NCBI RefSeq assembly: GCF_001194135.2
Contig: NC_068981.1
Span: 118,976,036 to 119,021,856 of the forward strand
Source: Octopus bimaculoides
Lineage: Eukaryota
Direction: 5' to 3'
Length of the DNA: 45,821 nucleotides
A program made the position numbers and the translations under genes. A model generated the notes under the pieces. It did no database searches and had not been told where the DNA came from. It was given only the letters and a program-made list of their open reading frames with translations. Positions 2,740-27,950 of the stretch are shown here, in pieces; within the stretch, counting starts at the first letter, position 1, and every line of letters starts with the position of its first letter.

Positions 2740-3130
2740 TCATTTCAAGCCTTTACAGAAAATTCAGATAGCTTACGTTGCATTAATACATCACAGTATC
2801 CAATGATCAAGATGTATGAGAGATTTTTAGTATGATCGTTATTTGTATTTTATAAAAGAAAGTTATATTGTATAACAAAAAAAACTATAAAAGATATCAT
2901 TCAAATCTAATCTACTTCTCTACAGAATTTCTGCATACACGATATTCTTGACAAGATATACATTTCCATTCTTCGCTTTTGCCATAACGCGAAGTCAACT
3001 TGAATTTCCTACCCTGGAGATAACTCAAAATAATGACTTGGTAATTCCCGTATTTGTTAGAGTTTTAATTCAAAATGAAAGCTATGCAAATATTGGTGTG
3101 TATTTCAGAACATTCCAGTCTCCTTTACAC
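2740..3130 (-). promoter_or_regulatory. Cassette U0: most diverged copy of the repeated promoter/first-exon-like unit
   Basis: caagatgtatgagagattttta (~2808) matches caagatgtataagagatatta of U3. Minus-strand donor CAAC|GTAAG at 2776-2772, weak X-box-like tttgccataacgcg at 2978-2991, and aattcccgtatttgtta resembling agttccagtgtttgtta of other units. Confidence 0.4.
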
Positions 3131-3381
3131 ATAGAGGAAAATAATTGAGCTTTGTTTGAACTGAGTTGACATATGTACATAGCAGTTATATGGTCATAAA
3201 CAAACAGATTTATTATATACGTATATACATTAACGTTAGGATATTTACGAAATTTTGTTCCTGTGCTTTTTTAACAATGTTTTAATGAAATATAAGCCAT
3301 AACGCTAGACCTGAGGGAAAAGGTGTTCCAAACGTATATATATATATACGTTCCAAATGTGTATGTATGTATGTATATATA

Positions 3382-3583
3382 NNNNNNNNNNNNNNNNNNN
3401 NNNNNNNNNNNNNNNNNNNNNNNNNNNNNNNNNNNNNNNNNNNNNNNNNNNNNNNNNNNNNNNNNNNNNNNNNNNNNNNNNNNNNNNNNNNNNNNNNNNN
3501 NNNNNNNNNNNNNNNNNNNNNNNNNNNNNNNNNNNNNNNNNNNNNNNNNNNNNNNNNNNNNNNNNNNNNNNNNNNNNNNNNNN
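3382..3583. other. Assembly gap (N run); other gaps at 16789-17523, 35492-36067, 40873-40972, 42655-42808 and 44619-45278
   Basis: N runs, mostly bordered by (TA)n or (TATG)n microsatellites. Confidence 0.99.
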
Positions 3584-4039
3584 AGTGCCAGATCTAACGT
3601 TTTCTTTTTTAAGATAGTAGAATTTGATTTGGGAATTTGCTGGGTATCTCGCCGGTCGTTGCGACCACCTAGAGGTTTCCTTGTTGATACGTACTAGTTT
3701 GGGTGTATTCTTCTTAATTACTAGCGGTTAAATGCAACTAGAGGAGTAAATTGTTATAGTTGAAGTTGTTTCTGAATGCCTAACAATATAATATTTATAC
3801 ACGTACAGGTATCCATAAAGTAATGAAAGCAATCAACACCCATACAGATAAACCCTTATATAGCTTACTATTAAAGCACTAAATAAACACAGATAAAATA
3901 TATAAATACATGCACATAAGGGACATGCTCTTTCCACTCTACAACCTTTTCCCACTTAATCCTGCTACTGCCAGTACTTATAAGACACTCGTAAGGATAA
4001 TTCTTCAAAAGCTGAAATAAAGGAAATGAAGGATGTATC

Positions 4040-5600
4040 TTGAATTGGACAAAATATTATAGTCTGGATCAGGCATGGGAATATCAGACTCTCCTTCTTC
4101 TCAAATTCATCGACTTCGATAAAGCTTTTGCTAGTGCTAATAGGAAATTGATCTGAGATATATTCTCCCTAAGTGGAATCCCCAATATACTCATTGATAT
4201 CATTCAACAGTTGTACAAAAATACTCAATGCCAAGTAATACACGATAGATTGTTAAAAAGTTTTTAAATGAAAACTGGGAATATTTTTGGTTGCTGTCAC
4301 AGATTTCATTGCATTTTCTTTTTTCTATTTTGTTTCAAACGCTTTCAAATGTCGTTATCTTGATTTAGTTGTGTATGCTAATGATGGAAATGAAATTCAT
4401 TTTTGCCATAGATTAATAGTTAATAGCTTTTCAAGTTTGCAAATTATGGGTAATTTTAGCCTATCGAAAGCCACCGTTATACCGTAAACTTCAAATTGGT
4501 GTTTGTTTCCATAGTAACAGACAATCTGTGACAGTAACCGAAAAGATCCAAAACTGGAGTAAAGTTGGGATGTCTCTTATCGTCGGGGATCTTCTTGATA
4601 GCGACTGACAGGGTGATGTGTCAAGATATTCAGGTCAAAAAGGAAAGATACAGTAGACACAAAAACAGGTGCTACAGGACCTAGGCCAGTCATAGGAAAC
4701 TGCGGCCCATAGGATTTTCTGAATAGCACGCCTAGCGAAAAATGACCATGAATTTCTTTAGTAGTATGGCCACCTGATGATAAACTATGTCTCATACAGC
4801 CTGCTTCTGGAAAAAAAAAAAAGGTTGCTCATGCCTGATCTAGGCTTTGCGGTTGACATTTGTCTAATATCCAAGAATATTCATCACAGACAGAGAAAGA
4901 CAGACAAGCTAAGAGAGGTAGCTATGAAAAACCAGACTGAGGGTTAATGTTGAAAAGACAGAAATCAGAAAAATTCAAGTCGATGACTCTGTCAAGGTTG
5001 AAAAATTACACGTCAAATGAAGTGTAACATTTAACTTGACTAGGAGGCATGATATCTACAACTAGAAGCACGTAAGATAACATCGAAGTAAGATGACAAA
5101 GAAATCGAGCATTCAACATTTTAAAGCCTGCCTGGAAAGCAAAGTCTCTGTGCAAACATTAAACTAAAAATATTAAGAGTAACATGAAGTTCGTCAGGCT
5201 ATGTGGTGTTGGTTCAATGCAATTGAATGCAAATATCCTCAAAAATATGTAAATAATTATAACTACCTCAGAAGAATCCTAAACATTAGCTATCCAGAAC
5301 CTTTGAGCAATAACGCTTCTAGAACAAAGACAAGGAGGAATCCATCGACCAACAAATAGCGAGAGGTGGGTGGAAAGGGGTTCGTCACACGTTAAATAGA
5401 CCATGGGTTTGTTTGACAAGGCAACCCTTATATTTGGACCCAAGACAGAAAATAAAGGAAGGACGCCCATGGAAGCGCTGGTAGAGAAGAGAAAGTGAAG
5501 AGGACAGAGATGATACAGAACCAGATGAAAAGTAAAGCTCATGGCAGAATGTGTTAGAAGACTGCTGTGGAGAAGTTACGTTCCACCATCAACATTTGAA
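4040..5600 (+). mobile_element. Decayed RTE-clade LINE (RT domain and 3' end) interrupted by insertions
   Basis: Frameshifted translation gives FIDFDKAFAS..GIPNILIDIIQQLY, KTGVKLGCLLSSGIFLIATD, QDLxFAVDICLIS and LRVNVEKTE, which are RTE-type RT motifs. Confidence 0.85.
4687..4837. mobile_element. hAT (Charlie-like) MITE inserted in the RTE RT domain
   Basis: Imperfect TIRs CAGTCATAGGAAACT / CAGGCATGAGCAACC and 8-bp TSD acctaggc (4679-4686) / atctaggc (4838-4845). Removing it restores the QDLxFAVDI motif. Confidence 0.8.
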
Positions 5601-5859
5601 AATATTAATTTAATATAGGTATAAAGTTTCCATTGTAATTTGTCATGATATATTGGTAGGATATATTGATATCATAGCAATATGATATCATATTGTGGTA
5701 TGTTTTGGATGTATGGTATTAAGAACATGTATCTTCAGTATAAAGTTCTGTATAAATGGCATACATTAGCTGTTAATGGTTCATGTATATCGCTAGTAGT
5801 GGAAACATTGATAAATCTTTTTTTTTTACAAGACCACCGGTAATTTTTTTTTTTTTTAG

Positions 5860-6150
5860 TTTGGTAAAGAGAGCTGTGAATATGGCTTTCGCAAGCCCAC
5901 CGACCCAGTAAGATGGACGTAGGTAACGCTCCTCATGAAAAGTTGAATGTCTACATCTGCAATGAGAAAAAACGTGTCAGTATAGAATTCTAGGCGGCTG
6001 GTTTTAAGGAAAAGTAGATGTATTGGGTCGTACGAGGCCTGGCTTGGCATGAGGCAATATGAATGACGAGATGAAAAATGATATGAATAGAAGTGATACG
6101 AGACTAGTTAGCTCCGAAGAGCAGAGGCCATTAGACTAGCGGTGGAAAAG
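5860..6150 (+). mobile_element. Probable RTE LINE 3'-end fragment
   Basis: Degenerate resemblance to the RTE C-terminal W.GHV.RM...GRP..W region. Confidence 0.45.
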
Positions 6151-6454
6151 GAGAGAAAACAACATGTCTTTGAACCAGAAATTGGAGAGAAATGGTGAGG
6201 AAACAACCACTAAAGCTGCCTAGTTCATCAGCAGTCAAAAGACTATGTACTGAACTAAATACTTTGGACGTCAACTAAATATTAGTATATTGCTTCCCAG
6301 TGTGCAGCTGAAGTGTGCGAACCACGTTCACACCTAGATTTCGGAGATATTCCCGCTACTCCTGTCTGCTTTAAACTCTTTTCGTTCATTCATTTCTTTT
6401 ACGAAGAGGTACTGTCTTTCACTATGCTTTTGGCTTTGTCAACCTGTTCCACGA

Positions 6455-6555
6455 AGGTGGCGAGCTAGTATAATCGTTAACACGCCGGACAAAATGCTTA
6501 CTGGCATTTATTTTGTCCATCTTTAAGTTCTGAGTTCAAATTCTGCAGAGGTCGT
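6455..6555 (+). mobile_element. 5' fragment of the main tRNA-derived SINE
   Basis: ggtggcgagctagtataatcgttaacacgccggacaaaatgctta...gttctgagttcaaattc. Confidence 0.75.
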
Positions 6556-9479: not shown

Positions 9480-10470
9480 TGGTGGTGTGGGTACAGTTCC
9501 CGTGGTTGTGATATGTGTGGTGACTATATTCAGTTGGACCGAAGAAATGAATGTCAACAGTCTATATAAACATGGCTTGTAGTAAATATATTGTATATTT
9601 TTATGCATAAAATTTAGAGATTTTGTAAATTTTGGCTGCATTAAATATTGACTTCAGTGTAACAAGGATAACTTGAAAGTAAGAGAATACTCTGGAATGT
9701 AGAAACGAAACTAAATAACCTGATTTTCTGTCTTTGAAACAAAATACAAATAACATATGTTATATATGTGAGATTAAAGATAATTACTTACCAAGATGTG
9801 CAGCAGTGATATCAAGAAAACAGTTAAGAAAAAAACGTCAACTTTTCTCTTTAATAAAATATTGGGAAAACGCATTGAGCGTCCTTTGTTTTCCAATTTA
9901 AAACATATTAAGTAAGGCAGACATCAGTTGACGTCATTACACAAAGCATTGCAGTTAATGTTCTTTACTTTCTGACTTTTTATTCAATCCTACCCGATTA
10001 AATAAGAACCAGTCAAGTACTGAACAATCTGATTAATTGTATGGTCAGTGAGCAACGACATAATTCGTAGAGTACCGGCCAAATTCGGTGGGATGTGCTG
10101 TCATGGTATGTGATCAGAAACAGTGTTACATTATAAGAGACGTATTGAGAGAAACGATATTGCAAATTGAGGTCTAAGACGTGTGGAAAGAAAAGATATA
10201 CAAATTGAAGCTTAACTGTCTACACGACCTTATCTCGATTTCATAGTAGAAATTGGCCAACTTATTTATGTCACTAATACCTACAGCCAGAATCAAAGGA
10301 AATTTACATAAAATTCTTTATGATACAATCATTCCTAACTGATATTTATTCGAAAACATTCATTTTAACTAAGTACCAGAGATTTTGTAAAGAGTGGAGC
10401 AGATCAAGAACAATTCAGTCAAATCCTTCACTACCATATACCAAATGTGATACTTCATTTGTAAAACGAC
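9480..10470 (-). promoter_or_regulatory. Cassette U2
   Basis: Donor CATCTTG|GTAAGT at 9791-9786, full CRE TGACGTCA at 9929-9936, degenerate X-box gctgtcatggtatg at 10097. ttggctgcattaaatattgacttcag matches ctggttgcattaaatgttgactacag of U6. Confidence 0.6.
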
Positions 10471-11524: not shown

Positions 11525-11740
11525 CCTACATACATTCAAATTTTGGCTCAAGGCCAGCAATTTCAGAGCAGAGATTAGTCGATTACATCCACCCCAAGCT
11601 GATACTTATTTTATTGACTCCGAAAGGATGAAAGACAAAGATAACTTCGGCAGTATCTGAAATGAGTAAAAAAAAGCCGGAAGAAATGCCGCTAAACATT
11701 TTGGCCGATGCGGTAACAATTCTGCCAGCTCATCGCCTTC
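11525..11740 (-). mobile_element. Main tRNA-derived SINE copy
   Basis: ttcaaattttggctcaaggccagc...ccgaaaggatgaaagacaaag...ttctgccagctcatcgcc. Confidence 0.85.
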
Positions 11741-12354
11741 CAACATACATACTTAGATAATAAACATACACAATACTCAATTATAATGCATATTCTTTAT
11801 AAGTGAAATATTGAAATGTAAATTAATTTCTAAGATTTCACTACCCTACACTTTTTGTAATTCTAGTGAATGGTTATAAATCAATTTTGGCGTAGTTTTA
11901 CACAATTTCTGTCATACACATTACTTGATGTACAGTTTGAAAAATAGTAAACTATAAAAGTTTAATAGCTGAGATAATGACAATCTGTAAAAGTCAATAT
12001 TGATATATAAAAAAAATAATTGACCATCAATTATCATTTCTTGACATATCAGAATCCTTATCATGCCCGTCACTTAGAGGGTGCACTGGATGGCACTGCC
12101 CACCCTCGATTCCATGGTGCACCTTCAGATTTAGAAAATACAGTTCACAAAAATCTTTCTGGAATACAAAGAACATTCTGACGCACTCATTGGCACCAAA
12201 ATCTGGTGACGGGTCTGATCCTTATCATCCGCATACAGCTGTTATTTCAGGCTCCTTATCAGCACCATTTAGTTAGGAATTTGGAATCTGTTAAATGAAT
12301 CTATGCGTGAGGAGTTGTATTAGTTTATTGTTCGTTGTAGTAGGCTACGAAATT

Positions 12355-12550
12355 CTCACATTCTCTTGAATTCCTGTAATTCAGGCTGCCTCATGGTCCC
12401 AGCAAACAGAATGGAAAAGGCGTTGCCCCGAAGGATAGCGAGGGTGACAGCTGGAACTGTGACTTTGACAGTTCCACCTGCGGATAGCCATCGCTTCCCC
12501 AAAAGCGTTGAGCATGAATATGGTCCAAGGGACGAGAACGCAGAATACAC
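12355..12550 (-). mobile_element. 3' fragment of a CRE-like RLE non-LTR retrotransposon
   Basis: SLGPY...TLAILRGNAFSILFAGT resembles the CRE-clade C-terminal motif S(L/I)AIQRGNA.S(I/V)LGT; AATAAA follows the stop. Confidence 0.55.
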
Positions 12551-12699
12551 ACTTTTTTGTGTTTTTTTTTTCTTTTTTCATTATTTTATACATTAGATAT
12601 TTGATTGACCTCTCTAATTACTCGTGGAGTGTATCAAACAAGAAAATATAAAATCTTTTTAACTAATCAGCAGTTGTTTTGTCTTTGAGATGAAGTCTT

Positions 12700-14085
12700 A
12701 GATATATTATTAATAGTGTGCGGCCGACATGAACAGTGATGGGAGATTGCAAAATTTCTGAAGAGTTTGTCTGTATGGTGTTAATAAGTATCTTTTTCTA
12801 CTCTAGGCACAAGGCCCGAAATTTTGGGGGAGGGGCCAGTCGACTAGATCGACTTCAGTATGCAACTGTTACTTAATTTACCGACTCCGAAAGGAGTAAA
12901 GGGAAAGTCGGCCTCGGCGGAACTTGAACTCAGAACGTAAAAACAGACGAAATATCGCTAAGTATTTCGCTAAGTATTTCGTGCTAACGTTTCTGCCAGC
13001 TCACCGCCTCGGTGTTAATAAATATTATTGACCTAATTATCAAAGGTGTGATTTCTTGATGTCTTTGGTGAGTATCAATTATCTATAAAACGATTTTTGG
13101 TAAAAATATTTCGACCAAACATATGTTTTGATTTAATCAAATGTTTCTATTTTGATTCATTGTAAACTTTAGTTGGATTAAATGTTTCTTTCAATAGCAA
13201 AAAGAGTAACCATCATTAAAAGTTTTCTAATGTAATATTTAGTGCAATATCGATAAAACAAAATAGAAGACAAAATGTATTAAAAGTTATGTGAGTTAAA
13301 GGAAGATTTCTTACCAAGATGTATAAGAGATATTAGGAAATCTTATCTATTCCATGAACAATCAGATATTAAAAACGTATTAACTCTTTATACTTTAATA
13401 TCTTTTTTCTTTAATAAAATATAGAAGACTTTGCTAAGGAAAATATTACATATCATAGATATTTTACAGTTAACTGTAAGCAACAACTGTTTGTTGTCAT
13501 GACGACAGACACCTGATCAGACCGTTGTATTTTGCTGAAGAGAACAAGATATCGCATTGTAGTGTTAACACGTCATTATCGTCAATTCATACCAGAACTG
13601 ATTGTCATTTACTTCTCCTTGATGTTCATTTAAATAAGTTCCAGTATTTATTTTCAATGCAGATTCCCTAAACCAGTAAATATACAGCGTTTTAACAATC
13701 ATCGTTCTACGATCGACTCCTATCTCTACAAGTTCATGTGGTGGTGGTGGCACGAAAATTGCGACGCTTGCAAAAACAGTTTGGATGCATAACACAATTT
13801 CATTGTTATTGACATGTCTTTTCTTTCTTTCATTTCAGAACATTTCATTCTATTTTCATATTCATATTTAAAGTTCTATAGCATTTTCATTTTATTTCAC
13901 TATTTTTCTTTTTTTTATATGGGCTTTGTTATGTTTTTTCATAAAATTCATTTTATCTAAAATAATTCCTAAATTTTCCAAATATTTTCAGTTTCTGTCA
14001 AAAAATGGAAATTGTGACTTCATGTGTGTTGTATAACAGAGGCTTCCGAATGGCCTAAAACTTGAAACTTTAAGTGTTTATGAGT
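12700..14085 (-). promoter_or_regulatory. Cassette U3 (well preserved)
   Basis: X-box-like GTTGTCATGACGAC at 13493-13506, gaacaatcagatatt at ~13356, donor CATCTTG|GTAAG at 13314-13310, ACGTCA at 13570-13575. Aligns with U4 and U6 over about 1 kb. Confidence 0.7.
12790..13010 (-). mobile_element. Main SINE copy inside the intron-like part of U3
   Basis: Family sequence flanked by the TSD ggtgttaataa at ~12778 and ~13011. Confidence 0.9.
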
Positions 14086-14300
14086 GTAGGTGCATTGCTT
14101 AGTGGTTAGAGTGTTGGCTTCATGATCGTAAGATTTTGGTTTTGATTCCTGGACCTGGTGACGCGTTGTGTTCTTGAGCAAAACACTTCATTTCGTGTTG
14201 CTCCAGTCCACTCAGCTGGTAAAAATGAGGAACACTGCAGCGGACCAGCGTCCCGTCCAGGTGTGGAATTTATACGCCACACAAACCTGGAAACCAGCCT
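14085..14300 (+). mobile_element. Second tRNA-derived SINE type
   Basis: cttagtggttagagtgttggc...gattcctggacc head followed by gtgttcttgagcaaaacacttcatttcgtgttgctccagtccactcagctg core. Confidence 0.7.
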
Positions 14301-14329
14301 TACGAGTCTATACAGGGTCCTATCAGAAA

Positions 14330-14780
14330 TAATTGTCACTACACTTTCTGGTTAGACTCCCAAGCATAACCAACTGAGACTATGGATACTATTCGATCAT
14401 CTCGTTCTTGATCTACCCTTAAGTCTCTTGCTGGCTAACTTGGCTTGAAGAAGTCGTCTAGCGATTCTTTATTGTGACCTCTCAATGCGAAGAATTAGCA
14501 GCTCGACCTGGAGAGATCCCTCCTGATCTCCAAACTCTGCACCCTGTCGAGTAACGTTACCCCCAAAATCCTTCGTAGGAACTCCATTTCGACCGCTTTT
14601 ATTCGCAATGTACTATTTCCGTCATTACCGAATATTGATGACCGTAGGTAAGAATAAGCGCGAAAACTGAATTGAACAAAGCGTGTTTGGCTATTTTACC
14701 AACCTCTCATCTTCTGAAGATCGAATGCTAGAGCTGTCACATTACTGCACTGGTACCTGTAATTCTAACATCATATTTTG
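14330..14780 (-). mobile_element. Decayed RTE LINE 3' fragment
   Basis: Minus-strand translation ILTYGH...EMEFLRRILGVTLLDRVQSLEIR...KR..GRSRTR. Confidence 0.8.
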
Positions 14781-15049
14781 CTTCCTACTTTCCATCATTC
14801 GTGAATAAAGCTCCGAGATACTTAAACTTATTTATTTGTCTCAGTGAAATTCCACTAACATACACAATGCACTGGGTAGAATCAAAATGTAAGACTTAAA
14901 TGTGATATCGATAAAACGAAGTAGATGGCAATACATATTAAAAGCTATCTGAGTTCAAAGAAGATTCTTATTATGATATGTACAATATATACCATTCAGA
15001 AAATCTTAACTACTCCAAGAACAATTAGATATTGAAAAACGCAAATATT

Positions 15050-15210
15050 CTTTTCTACTCTAGGCACAAGGCCCAAACTTTTTAGGGAGGGGGCCAGTCG
15101 ATTAGATCGACCCCAGTACGCAACTGGTACTTAATTTATCGATCCCGAAAGGATGAAAGACAAAGTCGACCTCGGCGGAATTTGAACTCAGAACGTAAAG
15201 ACAGCCAAAA
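15050..15210 (-). mobile_element. 5'-truncated main SINE inserted into the exon-like part of U4
   Basis: 15-bp TSD aaaaacgcaaatatt at 15035-15049 and 15211-15225. Confidence 0.9.
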
Positions 15211-15583
15211 AAAAACGCAAATATTATATGTACTCAGATATTTTGAAGTTTAGCATCAGATGTTGTCATAACAACAGACACATGAACAAAAACGTTGTTA
15301 TATTTTGCTAAAAAAAAACGAGCTTATACGTTGTGGTATTAAGACGTCATTATCATCAAATCGTGCCAGAATGGATTGTGTCAGGTAAATCACCCTGATG
15401 TTCATTGACATGAGTTCCAGAATTTGTTATTGATCCAGATTCCCTCAGTTAGTAATTAATCAGCACTGCGACGCTTATCGCTTTACGATAGACTGGTATC
15501 TTTTCAAGTTCATTATGATAGCGCAGGTACGAAAATTGCGGCCTCTTCCGAAAACATATAGCGTAGCTATATGTTACGTTATA

Positions 15584-15923
15584 GTGGAGGCGCAATGGCC
15601 CAGTGGTTAGGGTAGCGGACTCGCGGTCATTGTGAGTGTTTATTGAGCGAAAACACCTAAAGCTCCACGAGGCTCCGGCAGATGGTGGCGAACCCTGCTG
15701 TACTCTATAACCTCAACTTTCTCTCACTCTTACTTCCTGCTTCTGTTGTGCCTGTAATTCGAAAAGGTCAGTTGTGTCACGCTGAATATCCCCGAGAACT
15801 ACGTTAAAGGTACGCATGTCTGTGGAGTGCTCAGCCACTTGCACGTTAACTTCACGAGCAGGCTGTTCCGTTGATCGGATCAACTGGAACCCTTGACGTC
15901 GTAAGCGACTGAGTGCCAACAAC
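15584..15923 (+). mobile_element. Third tRNA-derived SINE type
   Basis: Head ggcgcaatggcccagtggttagggtagcggactc, tail ...ggaacccttgacgtcgtaagcgactgagtgccaacaac, and TSD atgttacg(t/c)tat on both sides. Confidence 0.8.
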
Positions 15924-16433
15924 ATGTTACGCTATGTTTTTTTGTTTCCTTTTGGTAAATATTACATATTTCATATTTAAAGATTCATTTTATTTCATTA
16001 ATTTTTTTTCATTAAATTCGTTTTTATTATTTTCATTCAAACATTTTCTTTAGGTTATTTTTTTTTTGTATTCGTCAGAAAAAAAAATTTAGCTCTCAAG
16101 GTTTTGTAATGCATTTTTTTTTTTTCTTATTACATAGAAATTATGATTTCCTGTATGCCGATAATAGTGACTTCCGAGTGGCTAAAATTCCAAACTTTGA
16201 CAGTTTGTAAATTTTTATTAATAATTTGTGACATTTTCGTAATTAATATATCCGACTAAGTCAGTCAAGAAAATTTGAACAAAATCTGACATTGTAACCG
16301 ATAAGAGTAAGAGCCAATATTTGTTTCTGTGTGTGATTGTGGACATAGGACTGTGAAAATTTTATTGAAATATATTTTAACTGAAATTTCTTTGTAAGTG
16401 TACGTATTATAATACCAGCGACTTTATTTATTT

Positions 16434-18270
16434 ACTAGCAGTATAACCCGACCTTGTCCGGGTGTGACTTATTACGCCATCTACGATAAGTCTTGCTAGG
16501 TGAAAATCAACTAAAAAGGAAAGCCTTACAACGAAAAAACCCTTATGATGTAAATATGTTCATAATTCAAAAGACGATGAAGTTAATAGGGAAAGTCTGA
16601 AGGCTGTTTTGCATAACATTATTAAGCGTACGTAAATTTCATCTGTCTAATTGGCTATAGAAATGCTTGTGCAAAACAACTTTTTGCGCTGCCCTGATTA
16701 TACATAGCAGGGTAATCCCTTTTCGCAGGAGCTAGGACGGCAATTTGTGATGAAGCAATTGCTGGTGATCTGTTGCTACACAGTTCTGNNNNNNNNNNNN
16801 NNNNNNNNNNNNNNNNNNNNNNNNNNNNNNNNNNNNNNNNNNNNNNNNNNNNNNNNNNNNNNNNNNNNNNNNNNNNNNNNNNNNNNNNNNNNNNNNNNNN
16901 NNNNNNNNNNNNNNNNNNNNNNNNNNNNNNNNNNNNNNNNNNNNNNNNNNNNNNNNNNNNNNNNNNNNNNNNNNNNNNNNNNNNNNNNNNNNNNNNNNNN
17001 NNNNNNNNNNNNNNNNNNNNNNNNNNNNNNNNNNNNNNNNNNNNNNNNNNNNNNNNNNNNNNNNNNNNNNNNNNNNNNNNNNNNNNNNNNNNNNNNNNNN
17101 NNNNNNNNNNNNNNNNNNNNNNNNNNNNNNNNNNNNNNNNNNNNNNNNNNNNNNNNNNNNNNNNNNNNNNNNNNNNNNNNNNNNNNNNNNNNNNNNNNNN
17201 NNNNNNNNNNNNNNNNNNNNNNNNNNNNNNNNNNNNNNNNNNNNNNNNNNNNNNNNNNNNNNNNNNNNNNNNNNNNNNNNNNNNNNNNNNNNNNNNNNNN
17301 NNNNNNNNNNNNNNNNNNNNNNNNNNNNNNNNNNNNNNNNNNNNNNNNNNNNNNNNNNNNNNNNNNNNNNNNNNNNNNNNNNNNNNNNNNNNNNNNNNNN
17401 NNNNNNNNNNNNNNNNNNNNNNNNNNNNNNNNNNNNNNNNNNNNNNNNNNNNNNNNNNNNNNNNNNNNNNNNNNNNNNNNNNNNNNNNNNNNNNNNNNNN
17501 NNNNNNNNNNNNNNNNNNNNNNNGTTTCCTTCAAGATTCCTACATGCTCGAAATGTACATACATCAAGGTATTTTTGTAGAAAATTTCACGAAAAAATAT
17601 TCATTTTCCTGGAAGTTAAGAGGAATTTAAGTGGAATTTCCGAAAATTGTCCCCCACCCTCCTCTCAAAACACTTTCACCGCAAATTTTTCTATATTCGG
17701 AATCTACATAATAAATAATATATGCATAGAAAATTTCATTAAAAAATATTCATTATTCTGAAAGTTATGACCTTCCAAAGTCGGTGGGTACAACTCTGTA
17801 GTTATGCAACATTGACGAACGTGAATGATTGTGTTTACTTGCACGTGTATGCATTTGAGAGAGCGAGAGAGCGAGAGAGGAAGAGGGGGAGATAGAGAAC
17901 GGGAGCAATGTGTATGTTGTTGTCACAGATTACGTATGTGTGGTTGTGTGTGTTTTTACGTATCAATGTTATGAAAAATTAGTAATGACGTTGTATGTAT
18001 CACTTTCTCTCTCTGTTGAGCGCGTGTGTAAGAACGCTGTTCCAGGTAGAAGGGAAGAAATATAAAAGTTGCTAGAAACAACAGCCAAATCTCCCTTAAA
18101 TCACACAAAGTAAACGGAATTTTAAAAATCTAATTACTGCACTGGAAAGTTCAGATCGAGAAAATTCCATTGATGTAAAAATTTTTACGAAAAAGTGGAA
18201 AATGTGGATTTCTATAAACTTTTAAAAAGGCTTCACACAGACACACAACTTCAGCTTAATATATTAAGAT
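16434..18270 (+). mobile_element. Non-autonomous Helitron/DINE-like element spanning a gap
   Basis: 5' actagcagtataacccgaccttgtccgggt (short stem) and 3' acagacacacaacttcagcttaatatattaagat; internal ~38-bp direct repeat at ~17581 and ~17731. The two ends may belong to different copies because of the gap. Confidence 0.6.
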
Positions 18271-18549: not shown

Positions 18550-19070
18550 TGGATTGTTAAAATAGTTAGAGCATCGGACATAGTACGTTGCGATGTTTCT
18601 ACGGTCTTTACATTCTGATTTCAAACGCCAAAGTCAATTTTACCTTCTCTTCTTCAAGGAACAAATATGGCTTTCATTACATTTCTATATCTGTAGGTTA
18701 CTGTATTGTCAGAAATGTTAGAGAGTCAGACAAATGACAATTTCCTTGCAATATTTTTTTTTCACTTATTTACATTCTGAGTTCAAATCCCGCCGATGTG
18801 CGTCAACTTTGCCTATAATCCATCCAGGTTCGATAGAATTAGCTACTAGTCAGGTACTGAAATCGATTTAATCGACTAACTTCTTCTTCAAAATGTTTGA
18901 AGCATTGTGCCTATGTTAGAAATAATTGACAGGCTGGCAGAACCGTTAGAGCATCCGACAAAATTCCTAGCGCTAATATTTTCCAGTTCTTTACATTCTT
19001 GAGGTCAAACCCTACCTAAACTAATTTACTCTTTAATCCTTTTGAAGTCGATTGAACACAGTATCACTCT
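18550..19070 (+). mobile_element. Tandem of old, diverged SINE copies; paralogous tandems at ~20700-21100 and ~22590-22930
   Basis: Repeated gttagagcatcggac(a)...ttacattctgagttcaaat motifs, with a shared aacagctgcagat.tgttagacat left flank. Confidence 0.7.
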
Positions 19071-19084: not shown

Positions 19085-19900
19085 TCAACAAGAGCACCAT
19101 TCATTTAAAAACAAATCTCTAATGTTGACCACAAAATAAAACTGTAAGAACACCATATCGATGAAATGAAATATATGGCAAAATACATTAAAAATTGAAT
19201 GAGAGCAGAGAAGACTTTTTACCAAGGTCTATACCAGTGAGATATTCGGGAAACCTCCAGAGAATCTCATCAATTCCTGTGATCAATGAGATATTAAAAA
19301 GCGTTTCAATTTTTTTTTTTTTTTTGTGTCATAAAGAATTCTTCACTGAAGCAAATTATAAGAGGTCAGATATTTTTCAGTTAATTGGAAGCGTCAAATG
19401 TTGCCATGACGACAGACACGTGATTAGAAAGACCACTGCATTGTGCTAAAGACAACACGATATGGCATTGTAGTATTAAGACTACATTGTAATCATTGTA
19501 GTCATTATCGTCAAATCGTGCCAGAGTTGATCGTGTCGTTTACATACGTCTGGAGTTCACAGATGATATAAGTTCCAGTGTTTGTTATCGATTCAGATTT
19601 CTTAAACCAGTAAATAAACGGTGTCTGTGGCACTCACTCTTCGGCGATCGACTCGCATCTCTGCAGGTTCATTGTAATAGCACAGAACAACTACGACTAT
19701 ATCAGCTGATATCAATGTAAACTTTAATTTTCTTTCCTTGCCGACCTTTGAAGACAGTAAATGTAAATCAACATTATGATGTCATCAACGGCTGTGTATT
19801 CTGTGAATTTATATATGTATGTTTGAGAGAGAGAGAGAGGGGTAGTGTAAATATGTGTGTGTGTACGCGCGCGTATGTGTGTACGTGAGTACGTGTGCTT
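19085..19900 (-). promoter_or_regulatory. Cassette U5
   Basis: X-box-like GTTGCCATGACGAC at 19400-19413, donor ACCTTG|GTAAAA at 19222-19217, gatcaatgagatatt, and conserved upstream block gtcattatcgtcaaatcgtgccag...agttccagtgtttgttatcgattcagatt. Confidence 0.7.
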
Positions 19901-20129
19901 CGGAGTGAATCGGAACGAGTAATTACTTTCGAAGAAAAAACGACAAATTTTGTAGTGTCAAAGGAGAGTCAAAGAATCTTGCAAACCAAATATATAAAAA
20001 AGATATAGAAAAAAATATTGAAATATGAAACTGTTTTTGTTTCCCTGTTCTCTCCAGTACAAGCAAAAAGAAAATGTACACAGAATCATGTTTTCCGTTA
20101 ATATATGTGAAAATATAAGACTAATAATA

Positions 20130-20555
20130 ATCATTTCTACTCACGGTACCAGGACTGAAATTTGTGGTGGTTTGGGGATCTACTCGACTACATCAACCCC
20201 AGTGTTTCACTAGTACTTAATTTACCGGCCCCGAAAGAATGAAAGGCAAAGTCGATCTCGACAGTATTTGAGCTCAGAACGTAGCGACGGGCGAAATACC
20301 CCTAAGCATTTCGTCCAGCGTGCTAACGATTCTGTCAGCTCACCGCCTTCAGTAGCAATAATAATCCTTTCTCCTGTAGACACAAGGCCTGAAATTTGGT
20401 GGTGGGAAGGGATAAGTTGATTACATCGACCCCAGTGTTTCACTGGTGCTTAATTCATCGACGCCGAAAGGATGAAAAGCAAAGTCAACCTCGGCGGAAT
20501 TTGAACACAGAATATAAAGACGGATGAAATGCCGCTTAGCATATCGTCCAGCGTG
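20130..20555 (-). mobile_element. Two head-to-tail main SINE copies
   Basis: Two family matches (cacggtaccaggactgaaattt... and cacaaggcctgaaattt...). Confidence 0.9.
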
Positions 20556-21923
20556 CGAATGGATGGTCAGGGTAATAAAGGCTTTGATCATAGATTTGCT
20601 CGATTATAACTGACCATCTAAGCAACAGCTACAGATTTATTAAACATATAGGGTTGAATGTTAGTTATTTAAATATAACTTCCATTAAATTTCCAAGTCA
20701 GATTCATTAGAGCGTCGGACAAAATAATTTGCAGTATTTTCACATTCTGAGTTCAAATGACTCCGAGGTCAATTTTGCTTTCAATCCACCCAAGGTTGAT
20801 AGAATAAAGCCCCAGTCAAGAACGAAGCAAATTTAGTCGACTAACAACTTACCCCGCAAACTTTCAGGCCATGTGCCTATGTTAGAAGCGATTAGGGAGG
20901 AAGAATCATTAGAGCGTTCGACAAGAGCCTTGCAGTAATATTCCGGCACCTCACGTCCTGAGTTCAAATACAGCCGAAATCAACCATGCCTTGCATACTC
21001 TCCGGTTTGGTGATATAAAAGTACCACTCATGTAATATGGGCTCAATGGTATCGACTAATCCATCTCCTATACAAATAAGACATTGAGCCTATACTAGAA
21101 ACAATTATTTTTTCCAAATCTATTATTGAAATTTCTATATCTACCTTTCCAATAGCCACTAGAATTTACAGCAACATTAACAGGAACCTCGTGCAGCTCT
21201 CCGGCTTACCAGCTCCAATAAATCCGTCTAACCCATGCTAGAATGAGAAACGGTAATGGTGATGATGGTAACGTTGATGATGATGATGATGATGACGATA
21301 ATGGAGAATTCTTTTCTAGCATGCATATTCACTATGAATGAAATACTGAGATTATGACAGTTACTTTCGATAGGATCCTATGAAGGAGATGCTTGAATAC
21401 CTTATACCCCCAACGATTCTCCGAAGAATAACGGGTAGAGAAGATGGATGGTTCGATCGACTGACCGAAAAGAATAAGGTCCGATAGATTTTTATGTATG
21501 GCTATGGACGTAAAATACTGAGCGGATGTTACTGAAGGACTTTTTTGTCTGTGGACCCACGTGTATGAAAGTATATCATAGTGTGTATATATCTCTGTAT
21601 ACATGTGCGTGTGTTTATACTGTGTATGTCTCTCTGTGTCTTCGTTTCCTTCTTTTATACAACATATTCTCGATGGAAAAATGATGGTTTGTTACTGTTC
21701 CCTAGATACAGACTCGATTAATTACAACGGAGAAATAATAATATTCTTTATGAGTTTGTGTTTTTGTTACGTCTCTCTTTGTTACGTCATCCTGCTTCAG
21801 ACTGGAATAGGACATAACAATAAGCAACAACAACGATGACTGGTTCAGGTTATTTCAATTTAATATAACCAACTCAATTCTACTTCCTTGAAACCGTTTG
21901 AGTAAATTATGACATCATCAATG

Positions 21924-21926: not shown

Positions 21927-21985
<59 letters not shown>
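21927..21985. repeat. (GT)n microsatellite; others include (CT)n ~26430-26550, (AC)n ~29320-29410, (AAT)n ~31062-31110, TA/TATG tracts ~35200-36615, and (GA)n ~45300-45332
   Basis: Directly visible simple repeats. Confidence 0.95.
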
Positions 21986-21987: not shown

Positions 21988-23044
21988 TCATCTAAATATT
22001 TAGTAGTAAAAATAATGATTCCTAAGTTAGTCATAAGGTCATATTTAGGAAAACGTTACTGATATTTATTTTAGTGAGATTGAAAGGATTAAATGTAAAG
22101 TTGGCCCTAACAGAATTTGAAATTAGAACATAAATGGTGTTGATTTATATCACAAGCTAGTTTGTCTGTTGATTTATCTACTCTGTCATTCAGTTGTGAA
22201 TAATTATAGACCATCCCTGAAGGATGGGAGAGAAACGTTGGCTGTGCAGAGCATGAATATTATTAATGTAACTAATGATAGCAAGTAGTGTAGTGTTTTA
22301 TATGCATCCTCGCATAGGACGAGTAAAGGAGCCTCCACGCAGTCGTTCGATCTGCAAGAAACACTATCAAATCTCTCATTTCTAGTTTAGAAAAGAAACA
22401 CACACAAGATAACGTGACCTGAGACATGTTATGAACAGGAAAAAATACTAGATGATCATGGCTGGTAATCTTTTGATCATATATCTGCTCACTACAACTG
22501 ACCTTGATCTAAACAACAGCTGCAGATCTGTTAGACATAATGAATTCAATCTTGATTATTAAAGATAACATTCGTTACATTTCCGTATCCGAATCGTTAG
22601 AGCATCGGACAAAATGTCTTTTTCGGTTCTTTACATTCTGAGTTCTACCTACGCCGAAATCAACATTGCCTTTAATAGATCCGAGGTCAATAGAAGAAAG
22701 AACCAGTCAAGTCAATACGAAGTAGATTTCATCGATTAACACCCTCCCCAAAACATTTCAGGCCTTGTGTTTCTGGTATAAATTATTGATGGTTTTGACA
22801 GAATCATTAAAGCATAAGATTAATTGCCTTGCTGTGTTTATTCCAACTCATCACGTTCTGAACCTTAAATACCACCGTGGGCACTCTGCCTTTTACACTT
22901 TCGGAGATTCGTAAATTAAAGTACAACCCAAGTATATATACACATAAACACACACACCTCTATATCTACCTTTCCAGTTGTAACTCCAAGCAAAATACAA
23001 ATTAATTTGAGATGCCACTACCTTAAATTTTTATAATATTGGCT

Positions 23045-23225
23045 TAAAACTTTGGCGCAAGTCCAGCAACTTCTATAGAAGGTAAGTCAATTACATCGTC
23101 CCCAGTACGCAAATGATACTTATCTTATTGACCTCGGTGGAATTTGAACTCAGAACGTAAAGGCGAACGAAATGTCGCTGAGCATTTTTGCCCTTCGTGC
23201 TAACGATTCTACCAGCTTGTCGCCT
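23045..23225 (-). mobile_element. Main SINE copy with internal deletion
   Basis: ttggcgcaagtccagc...gaatttgaactcagaacgtaaagg...ctaacgattctaccagcttgtcgcc. Confidence 0.8.
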
Positions 23226-23499
23226 TAAACCTTTTCGCAATATTAGTGATTGGCTATAAATCTAATTTGACACAGTTTTACATTATTTCTAACATCGGTT
23301 GATGTAGACTATGAGAAATATTGAAATATAATATATTTCTGAGGAGATTTCAGACTGAAAATACAAAAATATGAAAATATATTCGGATACGTAGTAAACG
23401 AAATTGATAATTAATTAATATTCCTTACAACATATCTGAATATTCAAGGATTTTAATATTTCATTCATTAAATATTTAACTAACTTCAATGTCTATTAT

Positions 23500-25163
23500 C
23501 CCGTAGATTATATCTAAGAAGAAAATACACCTCAGATTTTAGACCAGAATCTGGGTGTATTCATGTCGCTGAATAAGAAATAAGGCCTTCATTTTCTAGC
23601 GGCTCTAGTTTTTGAGATAATGCACTATCATTAAATGTACTTATCGCAAAGAAAAATGGATTTACTACCCTTCACGGTAGAAAATTCTTTCTTTTTTTTT
23701 TTGCAACGATATTCATGGCTTGCTAACGGAAGTGGTTACAGTAATCCCACGACTATCGCGGGTTTTACGCTCCAAAACCCACCGCGATAAGTGAAAATCC
23801 GCGAAGCAGAAACAGCACTGTGCTGTAAATTTTTGGTTTATTATTTTTCTAATTTGTATATATTTATTTTATTATAAATGCAAAACCACACCGCAGAGGA
23901 ATCGACGTAAGCTTAAATAATAAACATCGATAGGTGAACTGCGATATGGCAAGGGATTACTGTATATCAAAATATGAACTAAGTGAATTTCTAAATGAAG
24001 CTTAAAATTCGTGTTTCTTTTCAATAGCAACAAATGTGGATCAATCCCAAATGGTTACTTTAACTATGACGATTGAATAGCAGCAAACAATTGCCCTAGT
24101 TTTAAAGAAGATATCATACTACGATCACCAATGACTAATCTGTGTGGGTCTTAAGATGGTGAATTTTTTTCCTGGGTCAGCAGAGTAGACACAACAATTA
24201 CCGCTGCTTTTTTTGTCTTTGTGATAGTAGATCTAAGTATGCGAAAGCAACGTTCCCTGAGAGAATTTATGGTTGTTGGATAAAAGAATGTAATCTCAGA
24301 ACCTTGGTCGACAGAGATAAAACCATTTTACCACCACTGAACATCAAACTAGGTTTAACGAAAACTTTTGTGGAAAGCTTTGATAATGGAAGCAGAAAAT
24401 TTACAGTGCTGAGTATGGAGACGATAAAAGGCAGATATTTTCGACGGGCCACAAATCAGGGAATTCATGAAAGACCCACTTTTCTAAGAGACAGTGTACA
24501 AAGCTGAGGCAGATACATGATCTTCGTTTACGCTGGTTATAAGAATTTTTCTTAGGAGTCATACAGCAGATGACTACTCTGAACTAGTGAAGAACATTCT
24601 TCTTTCCATCAACTTAACTGTAATATGGACTTCAAAGTGCATTACCTTCCAAGCCATTTGGATAGTTTCCCAGGCAAACGTGGAGAGCTAAGTAATTAAC
24701 AGGGCGAAATAGGGAAGAAAGGTGAGCACTGGGATACCCATATGATGGCGGATTGCTGCCGAACCATTCGACGTGATTGTCTTGGTGAAACTCATCATAA
24801 GAAATCTCTAAAATGCAGCTTTCGTGAGAAGTCTGAATAAATGAATATTGTATCATAGACAACTTTCTACGCTCGTTTCACCATTATCTGATTCCATGTG
24901 TATAATTTAATCATAAATAAGTGTTTCCTTTTTGTATGAAGCCATTTTTTACCCAGAGGGCAACAATTATGATTTTTTTTCTCTTCAATCATTGTACCTG
25001 ATCCAGCCTTGTGCCCGGTTGTATACATAGCAATTAGGAGTATAACATATCTCAGTAACCAGAGCTGACAGAGAAAAACTGATGGAATATTTAGAACCAG
25101 CGACCAAACTTTACTTAAAAACAGGTCTGATGTTCCAGGTTCCAAATTCTGTGTTCCTCCGTG
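23500..25163 (+). mobile_element. Decayed Chapaev3-like (CMC) DNA transposon; left boundary approximate
   Basis: Frameshifted transposase remnants GLKMVNF, ILPPLNIKLGLTKTFVES, IFDGPQIREFMKD, KVHYLPSHLDSFP and MMADCC. Subterminal ctctagtttttgagata / tatctcagtaaccagag inverted pair; 3' terminus ...gttcctccgtg. The family assignment is from memory of these motifs. Confidence 0.7.
23739..23962. mobile_element. Tigger/pogo-type MITE nested in the Chapaev-like element
   Basis: ta|cagtaatccc...gggattactg|ta: TIRs with TA TSD. Confidence 0.85.
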
Positions 25164-25199
25164 TTACCGATGTGTGATCGGCTTAAAAACAAATCAGAG

Positions 25200-26400
25200 A
25201 TTACGAGATCTACTATGAAGTTTCTGAAGAGTTTAGTTGTATGATGTTCATACATAATAAAGATGTAATTATCATAATTGTGATTTCTTGATGTTTTTGG
25301 TGAATAGTAATTATTTATAACAGGTTTTTGGTAAACATATTTATACAGAACATATACCATGGTTATATTAAATGTTTCTGGTTGCATTAAATGTTGACTA
25401 CAGAATAGAAATGTAAAATTTTATACGATATCGATAAAATGAAATAGATGACATCAAGTTTTTAAAGTCGTATAAGCTCAAGGATGAATTCTTACCAAGA
25501 TGTATACTAGAGAGATATTAGGAGAACCTGCAGGAAATTTTATCTACTCCATGAAGAATCAGAAGTTTTCACTAAGGCAAATATTACATATTGATATTTT
25601 ACAATTAAGCATCAACTGCTGTCATGGCGACAAACACGAGATCAGAAAGCGCGTTACATTTTGCATTGTAGTATGAAGATATGAAGACGTCATTATCGTC
25701 AAATCATACCAAAAGTGGTTGTCATTTACATCTCCCTGGAATTCAAAGAAATAAGTTCCAATTTTTGTTATCTATTCAGATGCCCTAAACTAGTAAGTAT
25801 ACGTCGCTATGGTACTCTTGGTTCTTGGATCGACTCGTATCTCAACAAGATCAAATAGTGGCAAAAGTACGGAATTTACATCTCCCAAAAACAGAAAAAA
25901 ATAGGGCAATTTTATTGTCGTTGACATATTTTCTTTTCTTTCATTTCGCTACTTTTCATTGCATATTTTATCATATTTAAAGGTTCATTAAATTTGTTTC
26001 ATTTTTAAATGTGTTTAACGTTTTCTTTAATGAAGTTAATACTGCGTAAAATTCATTCGTACACATTTATTCATTAAATTCTTTAATTTATCAGAAGAAA
26101 AAGGAAACTTTCAAGTTTTCGTAGTCTTTTCCTTTTCTTGCCGTTTAAAACAGGAAAATTGTGACATCCGGTGTGTCTGTAATACAGACTTCCCCTTGGA
26201 TAAAATTTCAAACTTTGACGAGTTGTACATTTCTAAATATATGTCAAATGAAGATTATTATAATTAAACTACAAAATTACACCGGTGTAGAAAATTTGAA
26301 CAAAATCGAGCCCTGCATCCGACTGTCGATACAGAAAGGAGGAAATGTTACTGAGTTATATTTTTTATTGAAATTTCTTCGTGAGTGTACATCTCTATTT
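25200..26400 (-). promoter_or_regulatory. Cassette U6 (well preserved)
   Basis: Donor CATCTTG|GTAAG at 25495-25491, X-box-like GCTGTCATGGCGAC at 25618-25631, GACGTCA at 25686-25692. Colinear with U3 and U4. Confidence 0.7.
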
Positions 26401-26459
26401 CTAAGTGTGTGTGTTAACAGATGCGTGTGACTCTCTCTCTCCTTCTCTCACTCTCTCTC

Positions 26460-26539
<80 letters not shown>

Positions 26540-26849
26540 TCTCTCTCTCTTTGTTTCCTAAACTTCTTTCAAACACTGTATTGTCAATAACAAAATAATA
26601 GTGAGTAACAGTTTGCTAGCTATGGGCTTGGTTATGTCAAGCGTAAAATAATATCCTTCGTTCGTTTGCATGTTTGTGCATATCTCACTGTGTGTACTCA
26701 AGACTGATATGGGGCGAACAAAATAGCAACAATGAATACGACTTAAGATTTTGCCGCGGTCTAATAACTGAAACATGTAAAAAGTAAAGACAAACTTTTG
26801 ATTTTTTTTTTGTTGTTTTTGGCTTCCGTTAAATGTTCCTTTCGGTTGC

Positions 26850-27950
26850 AACATTCGTTATAAGTCTTCTACCGTTAACCACAAAATAAAATATCTAAAA
26901 CTGAATACGATATTATGGCAAAACGAAATACATACCAAAATGGTGTGAATTCAAGGAAAGTATTTGAAGTGAGTAAATGTAAATCATATTATGACGTCAT
27001 CAATGACTATATTATATTTGTAGGTATATATGCATGTATTTAAGTATGTCAGAGAGGGAGTGCATCTGTGTGTGTGTGTGTGTTTCCACGTGTAGGTGTG
27101 TGTGCGTGCGTGTGTGTGTGTGTGTATGTGTGTATAGGAGAGAATCGTAAGGAAGAATGTGATTCGCTGAAAAACTTTGTCGTAAAACTGCTGTATGCCC
27201 TCCGGTTTTATCCAGTATAAGCTCTTTAATTCAGAATTACATATGCAGACGGAATCTTCTATTCTATCAAGACATGTACAGATTTATCAAAAGTAATAAC
27301 GAGTTCCAAGTTAGCCTTAGGGCCACATTTGGAAGATACCACTGCTTAAATAATATAGAAAGGCTCTATGCTAACTTTGGCCCAAACCGGATTTGAAATT
27401 AGAATATAAATGATGTAGATTTATACTACAAACCGATTCGTCTTCTGATTTATCCACAAAGCATTTTGTCCACTGATTTACTTATTCTGTCATTCAGTTT
27501 CTTACATAAAACCGTGTTCTATGTAAGGAAGATAAAGTAGATTATGAAGGAAATAACATCCTTCAGGAGTCGATTGAATCGGCTCCTGAAGGATGAAAGA
27601 GAAAAATCTTATCAATTCCCATGAACAATCAGATATTAAAAATCGTGTCAACTTTTTTTGATTTAATAAAGAAGTCTTCGCTTAGGGAAATATTAGACGA
27701 TGTGTCATAGATAATTTAAAGTTAAACATCAGCTGTTGTCATAACGACGGAAACTGGAACAGAACGGCCGTTACATCGTGCGTGTTTTATTTAAGAGAAC
27801 AACATATTGCATTCAAATTTTAAGTCATCATCATCAAATCATACCAACGATGACTGTAACATTTACGCCTTTCTGAGTTTCAATGAAATACGTTCTAGTA
27901 TCCTGCTATTATCTATTCAGATTCATATTACAAATCAATATGCTTCCAAA
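26850..27950 (-). promoter_or_regulatory. Cassette U7 (rearranged, donor region missing)
   Basis: catgaacaatcagatattaaaaatcg at ~27620, X-box-like GTTGTCATAACGAC at 27735-27748, full CRE TGACGTCA at 26992-26999. ttaaccacaaaataaaa matches the intron-like part of U5. Confidence 0.6.

Follow-up and report, generated by a model that had tools for sequence, protein, structure and literature searches.

Head-to-tail arrays of promoter-bearing units are exemplified by the clustered protocadherin (Pcdh) and UGT1A loci, in which long coding variable exons are spliced to constant exons and, in the case of Pcdh, the promoter-proximal element of each unit is the CSE. In Drosophila, the hydra gene carries nine tandemly duplicated alternative first exons, and at least four of its exon 1 copies have been established experimentally as starts joined to the coding gene (PMC1904467). 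A different kind of precedent is provided by promoters targeted by RFX proteins through X-boxes. A restricted consensus, GYTRYY N1-3 RRHRAC, has been applied to Drosophila RFX targets (PMC2375033); functional X-boxes lie from -500 to +500 of the transcription start site (TSS), on either side (PMC5838959), and conservation of the X-box, rather than its mere presence, predicts function (PMC5838959; PMC2375033). The locus analyzed here is a stretch of 45,821 nt of Octopus bimaculoides contig NC_068981.1 (hereafter the window, to which all coordinates refer), for which a preliminary description had proposed about eight diverged cassettes on the minus strand, each composed of a promoter and a non-coding first exon that would be spliced to one gene beyond the left edge. 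An array of homologous units of ~1 kb was found to span 6.8-27.9 kb, comprising five clear copies at ~13.0, 14.9, 19.1, 25.2 and 27.6 kb (u13, u15, u19, u25 and u27, respectively) and two relics at 6.8 and 9.7 kb (u6 and u9). The units are duplicates in a common orientation and lack coding capacity; six of the seven have a conserved X-box, and some carry unspliced RNA with reproducible edges. These properties are best explained, tentatively and with somewhat less than even confidence, by an old local tandem duplication of an X-box-centered regulatory or non-coding transcription unit.

The array resembles Pcdh and UGT1A in the head-to-tail order of its homologous units and in the presence, in each unit, of a conserved promoter-proximal element, which is the CSE for Pcdh and the X-box here, but its units are non-coding, three of the splice donors have been lost and no splicing was seen. 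Hydra is the closest precedent for the first-exon proposal: at both loci a short 5' unit has been duplicated locally in tandem more than once, all copies point the same way, and repeats are present beside or inside them (DINE-1 in hydra, a short interspersed element (SINE) here); in the octopus locus, however, no start, junction or downstream gene was seen, and what RNA there is shows no splicing and comes mostly from the side of the supposed promoter. The likeness to RFX-target promoters lies in a 14-nt, largely palindromic X-box that fits the consensus and is conserved both between species and among paralogs (PMC2375033, PMC5838959), and that is located less than 60 nt (u13 and a u19-like copy) or ~315 nt (u25) from an RNA edge, readable as either a start or an end, and would be inside the -500 to +500 interval (PMC5838959) if that edge is a start. 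The differences are that the RNA is non-coding and unspliced and that the X-box is repeated six times in 21 kb. In producing unspliced, low-level, sample-restricted non-coding RNA from local duplicates with a conserved regulatory core, the array also resembles tandem long non-coding RNA (lncRNA) or enhancer-RNA loci, a class without defining sequence features, in which its membership is descriptive only; the fallback offered in the preliminary description, a decayed tandem gene or lncRNA family, is accordingly closer to the evidence than the first-exon reading. In the S-X-X2-Y module of major histocompatibility complex (MHC) class II, the X2 element, similar to a cAMP response element (CRE), lies directly 3' of X1, and the Y box (ATTGG) follows ~20 bp further. 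The unit likewise combines an RFX-type X-box with a CRE-like TGACG and a CTGATTG-type motif, but such a module was rejected: the TGACG is ~64 nt upstream of the X-box, the Y-like CTGATTGTT is ~125 nt away, and no copy contains an ATTGG (CCAAT) core. No literature linking octopus, RFX and X-box was found.

The output of a generic repeat finder was dominated by microsatellites, N runs and SINEs, and copies of the unit were instead detected by self-BLASTN, with N runs and low-complexity sequence masked, and by nhmmer with a profile hidden Markov model (HMM) built from the copies. Every copy recognized by the profile HMM is on the minus strand, with 7 of 7 falling within 21 kb and none in the remaining 25 kb of the window, which bears out the uniform orientation claimed previously. 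Identity between copies ranges from 63 to 76%. Self-BLASTN aligned 13013-14071 with 25245-26216 (63%, E 2e-89), 13247-13737 with 19155-19672 (68%), 13436-13778 with 15214-15556 (70%), 13229-13397 with 14886-15062 (75%) and 13338-13683 with 27604-27941 (66%). The earlier count of about eight has to be lowered to five plus two, as the copies at 6.8 and 9.7 kb are partial and the one placed at 2.8 kb showed no unit homology on either strand at nhmmer E<=10; the plus strand carries the single CTTGGTAA in its vicinity (3037). None of the units is cut by the assembly gaps at 3382-3583 and 16789-17523, and no conclusion drawn here hinges on a reading frame. The second gap, flanked on both sides by unique sequence, could hide one more copy, and because it intervenes, both the spacing between u15 and u19 and the upstream end of the RNA block at 13.4-16.7 kb are provisional. 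Four more gaps lie outside the array (35492-36067, 40873-40972, 42655-42808 and 44619-45278), and their flanks are mostly TA/TG-rich simple sequence.

Homology between duplicates is not confined to the unit. The upstream block of u15 (15933-16403) is homologous to 25927-26390 on the same strand, and non-unit segments have been co-duplicated, also on the same strand (11851-12648 with 23231-23527, and pieces of 19.7-22.2 kb with 26.5-27.5 kb), from which it follows that the segments exceeded 1 kb when they were duplicated. Kimura two-parameter (K2P) distances are 0.29-0.48 among u13, u15, u19 and u25, larger for u27 and 0.75-1.05 for u6, versus ~0.045 between species, and u13, u25, a copy resembling u19 and an additional one all have orthologs in the sister species. 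The array is therefore older than the species split.

The X-box palindrome, listed in the preliminary description as an element of the unit, was confirmed at a homologous position in six units (Table 1), and the pattern derived from the units occurs nowhere else in the window. In the alignment of the six paralogs the most conserved 20-column window, GTGTCTGTCGTCATGACAAC, is the X-box, with a mean pairwise identity of 0.82 versus 0.48 for the core; its conservation was attained with a frequency of 0.0004 in 5000 column shuffles. The next most conserved windows are ATCTGATTGTTCAT-GGAAT, CAGTTAACTGTAAAATATCT and TGGTATGAATTGACGATAAT. All six X-boxes fit the restricted GYTRYY N1-3 RRHRAC, and that of u6 also matches the strict RTNRCC N1-3 RGYAAC. 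The window holds 12 sites of the RFX consensus in total, versus 5 +/- 2 expected, and six of these are at the homologous unit position. Matches outside the units include 4505-4518 (GTTACTATGGAAAC) and 18068-18082 (palindromic GTTGCTAGAAACAAC), the surroundings of which have no detectable unit homology. A search for related units in metagenomes with a degenerate X-box 21-mer returned 54 loci, about as many as estimated by chance, in which only ~30 nt around the X-box match the unit HMM, and these candidates were rejected.

The remaining elements proposed for the unit are distributed unevenly among the copies. At <=2 mismatches, AATATCTGATTGTTC is found in five units, always on the minus strand, and at <=3 mismatches it has 10 matches versus 3.6 expected. 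The TGACGT half-site, held to be a conserved upstream element, is present in u13, u15 and u25 and absent from the other copies. The same applies to the donor-like CTTG/GTAA (the slash marking the putative exon end) that had been assigned to every unit: on the minus strand it is found only at 9792, 13315, 19223 and 25496, that is, in four of the seven units (u9, u13, u19 and u25), and it has been lost in u15, u27 and u6. The distance from X-box to donor, 122-178 nt, agrees with the ~120-180 nt given before. The conserved TAAAATAT stretch doubles as a branch-point-like TTAAC and is followed by a pyrimidine tract and an AG at 13435-13434.

Conservation was also assessed between species, using runs labeled organisms B, C and D, which represent the sister species and in which the ortholog is ~5% diverged. 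Among the differences listed, two stretches of u13 carry no substitution, namely the 117 nt of 13441-13557, with the X-box inside, and the 112 nt of 13243-13354, with the donor inside and a 10-nt insertion behind 13332; the joint probability of both runs, among these differences, is ~0.012. The share of sampled 31-mers common to the two species is 0.44 in 13175-13560 versus ~0.14 in the rest of 13000-14000 (P 0.001). A substitution deficit with P 0.005 was also obtained, for an interval picked after seeing the data. These comparisons make selective constraint on the X-box region likely. The 10 extra nt of the sister species at 13332, which read TTAGGAAAAC on the plus strand and precede the donor by 17 nt, match a segment of u19, u25 and u9, and it is therefore u13 of organism A that lost 10 nt in the putative exon, a deletion that would be compatible with a non-coding unit.

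Spliced RNA was searched for in three raw-read runs and in the contigs of six RNA or RNA-like runs. The junction reads that the preliminary description had asked for, starting at 9792, 13315, 19223 or 25496, were found in none of these runs. In the three raw-read RNA runs, which date from 2026, come from the same species and were sampled at ~12 million reads each, u13 and u15 have zero depth, and the reads that could be placed all belong to SINEs and other repeats. Among ~17 indexed RNA runs of organism A, only run X13 contains sequence words from 13-28 kb, and 3.6-12.7 kb is represented in none of them. The X13 contigs are unspliced and cover 13438-14186, 14184-14980, 15241-15580 and 15865-16462 at a depth of 9-15; low-depth patches occur at 22.2-25.1 kb, and there is no X13 RNA on u19, u25 or 13020-13437. 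In run X26, from organism D, a contig extends from 13434 to ~14182, with its edge within 4 nt of the X13 edge, and a second contig of 480 nt covers the upstream block and X-box of a u19-like paralog and ends 27 nt past the latter, where the DNA contig continues. In u13 of two species and in the u19-like copy, the RNA thus covers the supposed promoter and goes no further than 27-59 nt beyond the X-box, the putative exon of u13 having zero depth. On u25, X26 and X27 (also from organism D) present one contig each, from 23711 or 24057 to 25941 or 25948, which crosses the AG, the putative exon and the donor at 25496 unbroken and unjoined and has its edge ~315 nt upstream of the X-box. The depth of organism D RNA is zero at 23252-23683 and 25988-26400, both of which are covered by DNA contigs. 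A further organism D RNA block spans ~22100-23018, another low-depth paralog contig crosses its donor unspliced, and at least four different units carry RNA in this organism. The edges are reproducible, at 13438 in organism A versus 13434 in organism D, and at 25941 versus 25948 in two samples. Runs X13, X26 and X27 can be taken as RNA rather than DNA, given that their SINE-to-unique depth ratio is ~100x lower than that of DNA runs.

The edge at 13434-13438 coincides with several landmarks at once. It matches the minus-strand TSS expected ~30 nt after TAAAATAT and 55-59 nt after the X-box, it matches a minus-strand 3' splice-site look-alike (TTAAC ... ttttccttAG), and it lies 18-22 nt before an ATTAAA and A-rich tract. 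The other end of the X26 contig across u25, at 23711, is adjacent to a minus-strand run of A11. At 14419 the X13 RNA contig has C where the reference and DNA run X4 have T; read on the minus strand, this would be A>G, and it represents either an adenosine-to-inosine (A-to-I) editing site in minus-strand RNA or a single-nucleotide polymorphism. As a means of assigning strand from RNA-DNA differences, this single T>C was too weak to use.

No open reading frame (ORF) of at least 90 aa with a credible Pfam match was found in the array, in line with the earlier remark that no coding exon can be recognized between units; a sub-threshold PelG match, the sole Pfam signal among ten ORFs, was dismissed as chance in low-complexity sequence. 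None of the three frames is open across the putative exon, and the copies are set apart by indels whose lengths are not multiples of 3. The ORF and Pfam scan and the RNA runs detected no coding feature or RNA in 1-12.7 kb of the window. A known small-RNA gene was rejected on the grounds that the unit contains no Rfam family at the gathering threshold and no tRNA, and a structured RNA on the grounds of an RNAalifold energy of -2.8 kcal/mol, with seven pairs that correspond to the X-box palindrome only and zero compensatory pairs. Transcription by RNA polymerase III was rejected because T4+ runs occur within the transcribed part on both strands.

According to the explanation favored here, a non-coding segment of ~1-2.5 kb would have undergone tandem duplication at this locus long ago, and selection would have kept a compact cis-regulatory core in which a TGACG pair, TTAACTGTAAAATATC and ATCTGATTGTT surround the RFX-type X-box. 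The copies would then be small non-coding transcription units or promoter-like modules that give rise to unspliced RNA in some samples, with edges beside the X-box (27-59 nt, in u13 and the u19-like copy) or ~315 nt upstream of it (u25), and copies from which sequence beyond the X-box is gone (u25 and u15, which are without the AT-rich ATTAAA segment) would be read through. An RFX-family protein may bind the X-boxes, and the RNA edges presumably correspond to transcription starts or ends. A minus-strand RNA with its start near a TATA-like box, ~315-410 nt upstream of the X-box, and its end a short way past the X-box is slightly favored over a plus-strand start beside the X-box, on account of ATAAAATA, a putative TATA box ~27 nt before the 25945 edge, the A11 run at 23711 and the T>C difference at 14419. 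A start on the plus strand, next to the X-box, nevertheless accounts for the same contigs about equally well, and agrees with X-boxes located downstream of the TSS (PMC5838959).

Several observations weigh against a duplicated functional unit. Around five consensus X-boxes per window are expected by chance. Organisms B, C and D amount to one independent comparison, because identical differences are found in all three, and the substitution deficit between species has a P of 0.13 when the core (13255-13626) is defined beforehand from the paralogs. Logan contigs carry no direction, which leaves the RNA edges readable as starts or ends, and these edges fall at differing unit positions from copy to copy. 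Expression is low, in one of ~17 organism A RNA runs and in none of the three deep runs. The main rival, a neutral relic, that is, a slowly decaying segmental or tandem duplication of non-functional DNA in which the X-box is a chance palindrome inherited by the copies and the RNA is pervasive or intronic background, appears rather unlikely to us, even though it accommodates the lack of significance with the predefined core, as well as the homology of ~60-65% that reaches well past the core, both upstream and into the putative intron, the co-duplication of other, non-unit segments, the SINE insertions and deletions in the copies and the weak, patchy and unspliced expression. What it leaves unexplained is that conserved columns cluster at the X-box, that none of the six X-boxes has departed from the restricted RFX consensus in spite of 0.3-1.0 substitutions per site, that the two long runs between species are free of substitutions among the differences listed, and that RNA edges repeat within 4-7 nt across samples and species. 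An ancient transposable element (TE), for instance solo long terminal repeats (LTRs) or a non-autonomous LTR element, each copy carrying a TATA box, TSS and poly(A) signal that would account for RNA edges within the unit, is very improbable. The unit size of 0.5-1 kb with transcription-factor sites, the TATA-like box before the u25 edge and the ATTAAA and A-rich tract directly past the u13 edge would suit such an element, but not the confinement of seven co-oriented copies to 21 kb, the duplication of flanking non-unit segments along with the units, or the ends of the pairwise homologies, which stop at different places for each pair and define no common sharp termini. Moreover, a 1.6-Gb DNA contig set (12 million contigs) compared with u13 at >=80% likeness yielded 19 contigs, representing the locus, one paralog and short hits to the A-rich tract, whereas SINE and other TE segments of the window reach a k-mer depth of 1e5-1e6 in the same data. 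Within the reach of >=80% likeness, the unit is no young or high-copy dispersed element, and the preference of the preliminary description for local tandem duplication over TE dispersal is upheld.

The remaining alternatives invoke splicing or promoter choice. In the original proposal, each unit would be an alternative promoter with a TSS ~55-60 nt past the X-box and a non-coding first exon ending in the donor CTTG/GTAAG, spliced to a gene left of the window in a tissue or stage outside the sampling. This appears improbable, although the array does present tandem homologous units in one orientation, tandem alternative first exons have a precedent (PMC1904467), and the minus-strand order of X-box, TAAAATAT ~30 nt before 13436 and GT donor 119 nt further on can be followed in u13, u19, u25 and u9. 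The RNA edge at 13434-13438 falls at the exact TSS position predicted, but the RNA is on the upstream side of it, and the putative exon at 13433-13315 has zero depth in samples that express the neighborhood; the u19-like copy behaves alike, and u25 RNA begins ~315 nt upstream of the X-box or reads through, so that initiation proper to each unit in the exon direction was not seen in the available samples. Similarly, the u13 donor is part of the 112-nt run that is free of substitutions among the differences listed, but the 10-nt insertion of the sister species falls in the putative exon close by, GT donors are lost in three of seven units, RNA of the u25 ortholog passes the donor unbroken in two samples, as does the contig of a further paralog, no joint to a common acceptor was found in any run searched, and 3.6-12.7 kb is in no RNA run. 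The model has no support from the RNA data and is at odds with them at every unit where expression was seen. A related idea, for which our confidence is low, is an RFX-dependent alternative-promoter array in which X-box modules would fire in different cells or stages (e.g. ciliated sensory cells or the germ line) and give either a non-coding first exon, spliced to a gene further left than the window, or promoter-associated non-coding RNAs that form a family, as a non-coding analog of clustered-Pcdh promoter choice based on RFX rather than CTCF. Hardly credible, finally, is a duplicated internal non-coding exon, with the X-box intronic and a 3' splice site (TTAAC branch point, pyrimidine tract and AG at 13435-13434) followed by an exon of ~119 nt and a 5' splice site. 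The AG and its upstream pyrimidine tract are kept in u13, u19, u25 and u27, TTAAC is ~34 nt upstream of the AG, and the organism D RNA contig ends exactly at the G of the AG (13434); yet the exon is never covered and never joined to anything, u25 is read through at both splice sites, and three closed frames and a variable exon length deprive it of a coding rationale. Duplication of an X-box-centered unit, with the reservations given above, is retained as the preferred account of the array.

Other features of the window concern mainly its repeats. A SINE-like family of ~150-350 nt has at least 12 copies in both orientations, one of them inserted in u15, and reaches k-mer depths of 1e5-1e6 in DNA runs; its copies are at 1526-1912, 1996-2159, 6454-6554, 11535-11739, 12782-13021, 15034-15210, 18736-19042, 20126-20559, 22591-22787, 23128-23226, 30597-31334 and 33976-34082. 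The family is abundant in all RNA runs, where reads on it derive from copies elsewhere in the genome. Further very high-copy elements, with a depth of 1e5-1e6 in DNA contigs, are located at 14056-14246, 15584-15965 (inserted in the upstream part of u15) and 23684-23971, and break the RNA contigs. To the right of the array there is a second group of diverged same-strand duplications (63-71%), pairing 28629-29065 with 33726-34336, 29418-29583 with 40985-41148 and 29834-30108 with 42290-42554, and beyond the ~1-kb unit the whole window looks like an old, decayed direct segmental duplication. A diverged direct pair, 37738-38190 and 39505-39966 (60%), holds a 109-aa ORF on the minus strand (37769-38098) with no Pfam match at E<=0.1 and may be a degraded mobile-element fragment. 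An inverted repeat of ~160 nt with 84% identity (34641-34796 and 35184-35025) adjoins the gap at 35492-36067, and long microsatellites, (GATA)n, (GT)n, (CT)n and (AAG)n, occur at 129-222, 475-535, 21927-21985, 26431-26558 and 31340-31500.

Table 1. Units of the array, their sequence elements and associated RNA blocks, in window coordinates (a slash marks the putative exon end).
Feature	Start	End	Strand	Description
u6	6808	6985	minus	Decayed partial copy, ~180 nt; perfect X-box and ATCTGATTGTT block kept, donor lost; nhmmer E 1e-14; BLASTN to u27 66%, E 2e-8
u9	9735	9819	minus	Relic; donor block ACATCTTG/GTAAGT alone survives, X-box lost; BLASTN to u13 74%, E 3e-7; nhmmer E 3e-3
u9, doubtful second piece	10096	10182	minus	nhmmer E 0.02
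u13	13013	14071	minus	Most complete copy: TGACGATAATGACGT, X-box, TTAACTGTAAAATATCT, ttttccttAG, ATCTGATTGTTC block, CTTG/GTAAG; last base of putative exon 13315
u15	14860	16403	minus	Split by SINE (15043-15210) and high-copy element (15584-15965); donor mutated to CATAATAAG; segment after X-box deleted
u19	19104	19729	minus	X-box and CTTG/GTAAA; last base of putative exon 19223
u25	25245	26390	minus	X-box and CTTG/GTAAG; last base of putative exon 25496; without the AT-rich ATTAAA segment found in u13
u27	27566	27946	minus	Shorter, more diverged; X-box kept, donor lost
X-box of u13	13493	13506		GTTGTCATGACGAC on plus strand; 14 nt
Homologous X-box	6944	6957		Perfect GTTGCCATGGCAAC
Homologous X-box	15262	15275		
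Homologous X-box	19400	19413		
Homologous X-box	25618	25631		
Homologous X-box	27735	27748		
Donor-like CTTG/GTAA of u13	13311	13318	minus	Same motif at 9788-9795, 19219-19226 and 25492-25499; never seen spliced
TATA-like ATAAAATA	25965	25972	minus	~27 nt upstream (minus strand) of RNA edge at 25945
Conserved TAAAATAT within TTAACTGTAAAATATCT block	13459	13466	minus	~30 nt upstream (minus strand) of RNA edge at 13434-13438
Unspliced RNA block	13434	16677		Left edge 13438 in organism A (X13) and 13434 in organism D (X26), 55-59 nt from X-box; nothing on 13020-13433
Unspliced RNA block, organism D	23711	25948		Depth 59 (X26) and 35 (X27); covers all of u25; right edge 25941-25948

Taken at this strength, the locus is of modest interest, as a duplicated locus for regulation or non-coding RNA rather than a demonstrated protocadherin-style promoter array, and in either case the protocadherin-like reading needs stranded 5'-end data before being taken further. 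If the array is only a decaying duplication, it illustrates that promoter-like motifs and a GT dinucleotide, copied by descent, can mimic an array of variable first exons. Should the X-box modules prove functional, the side-by-side presence of six copies of one RFX-type unit that have diverged naturally would be a convenient natural experiment on the contribution of the flanking blocks, and the array could represent lineage-specific non-coding transcription in a cephalopod, a group in which regulatory elements have barely been characterized.

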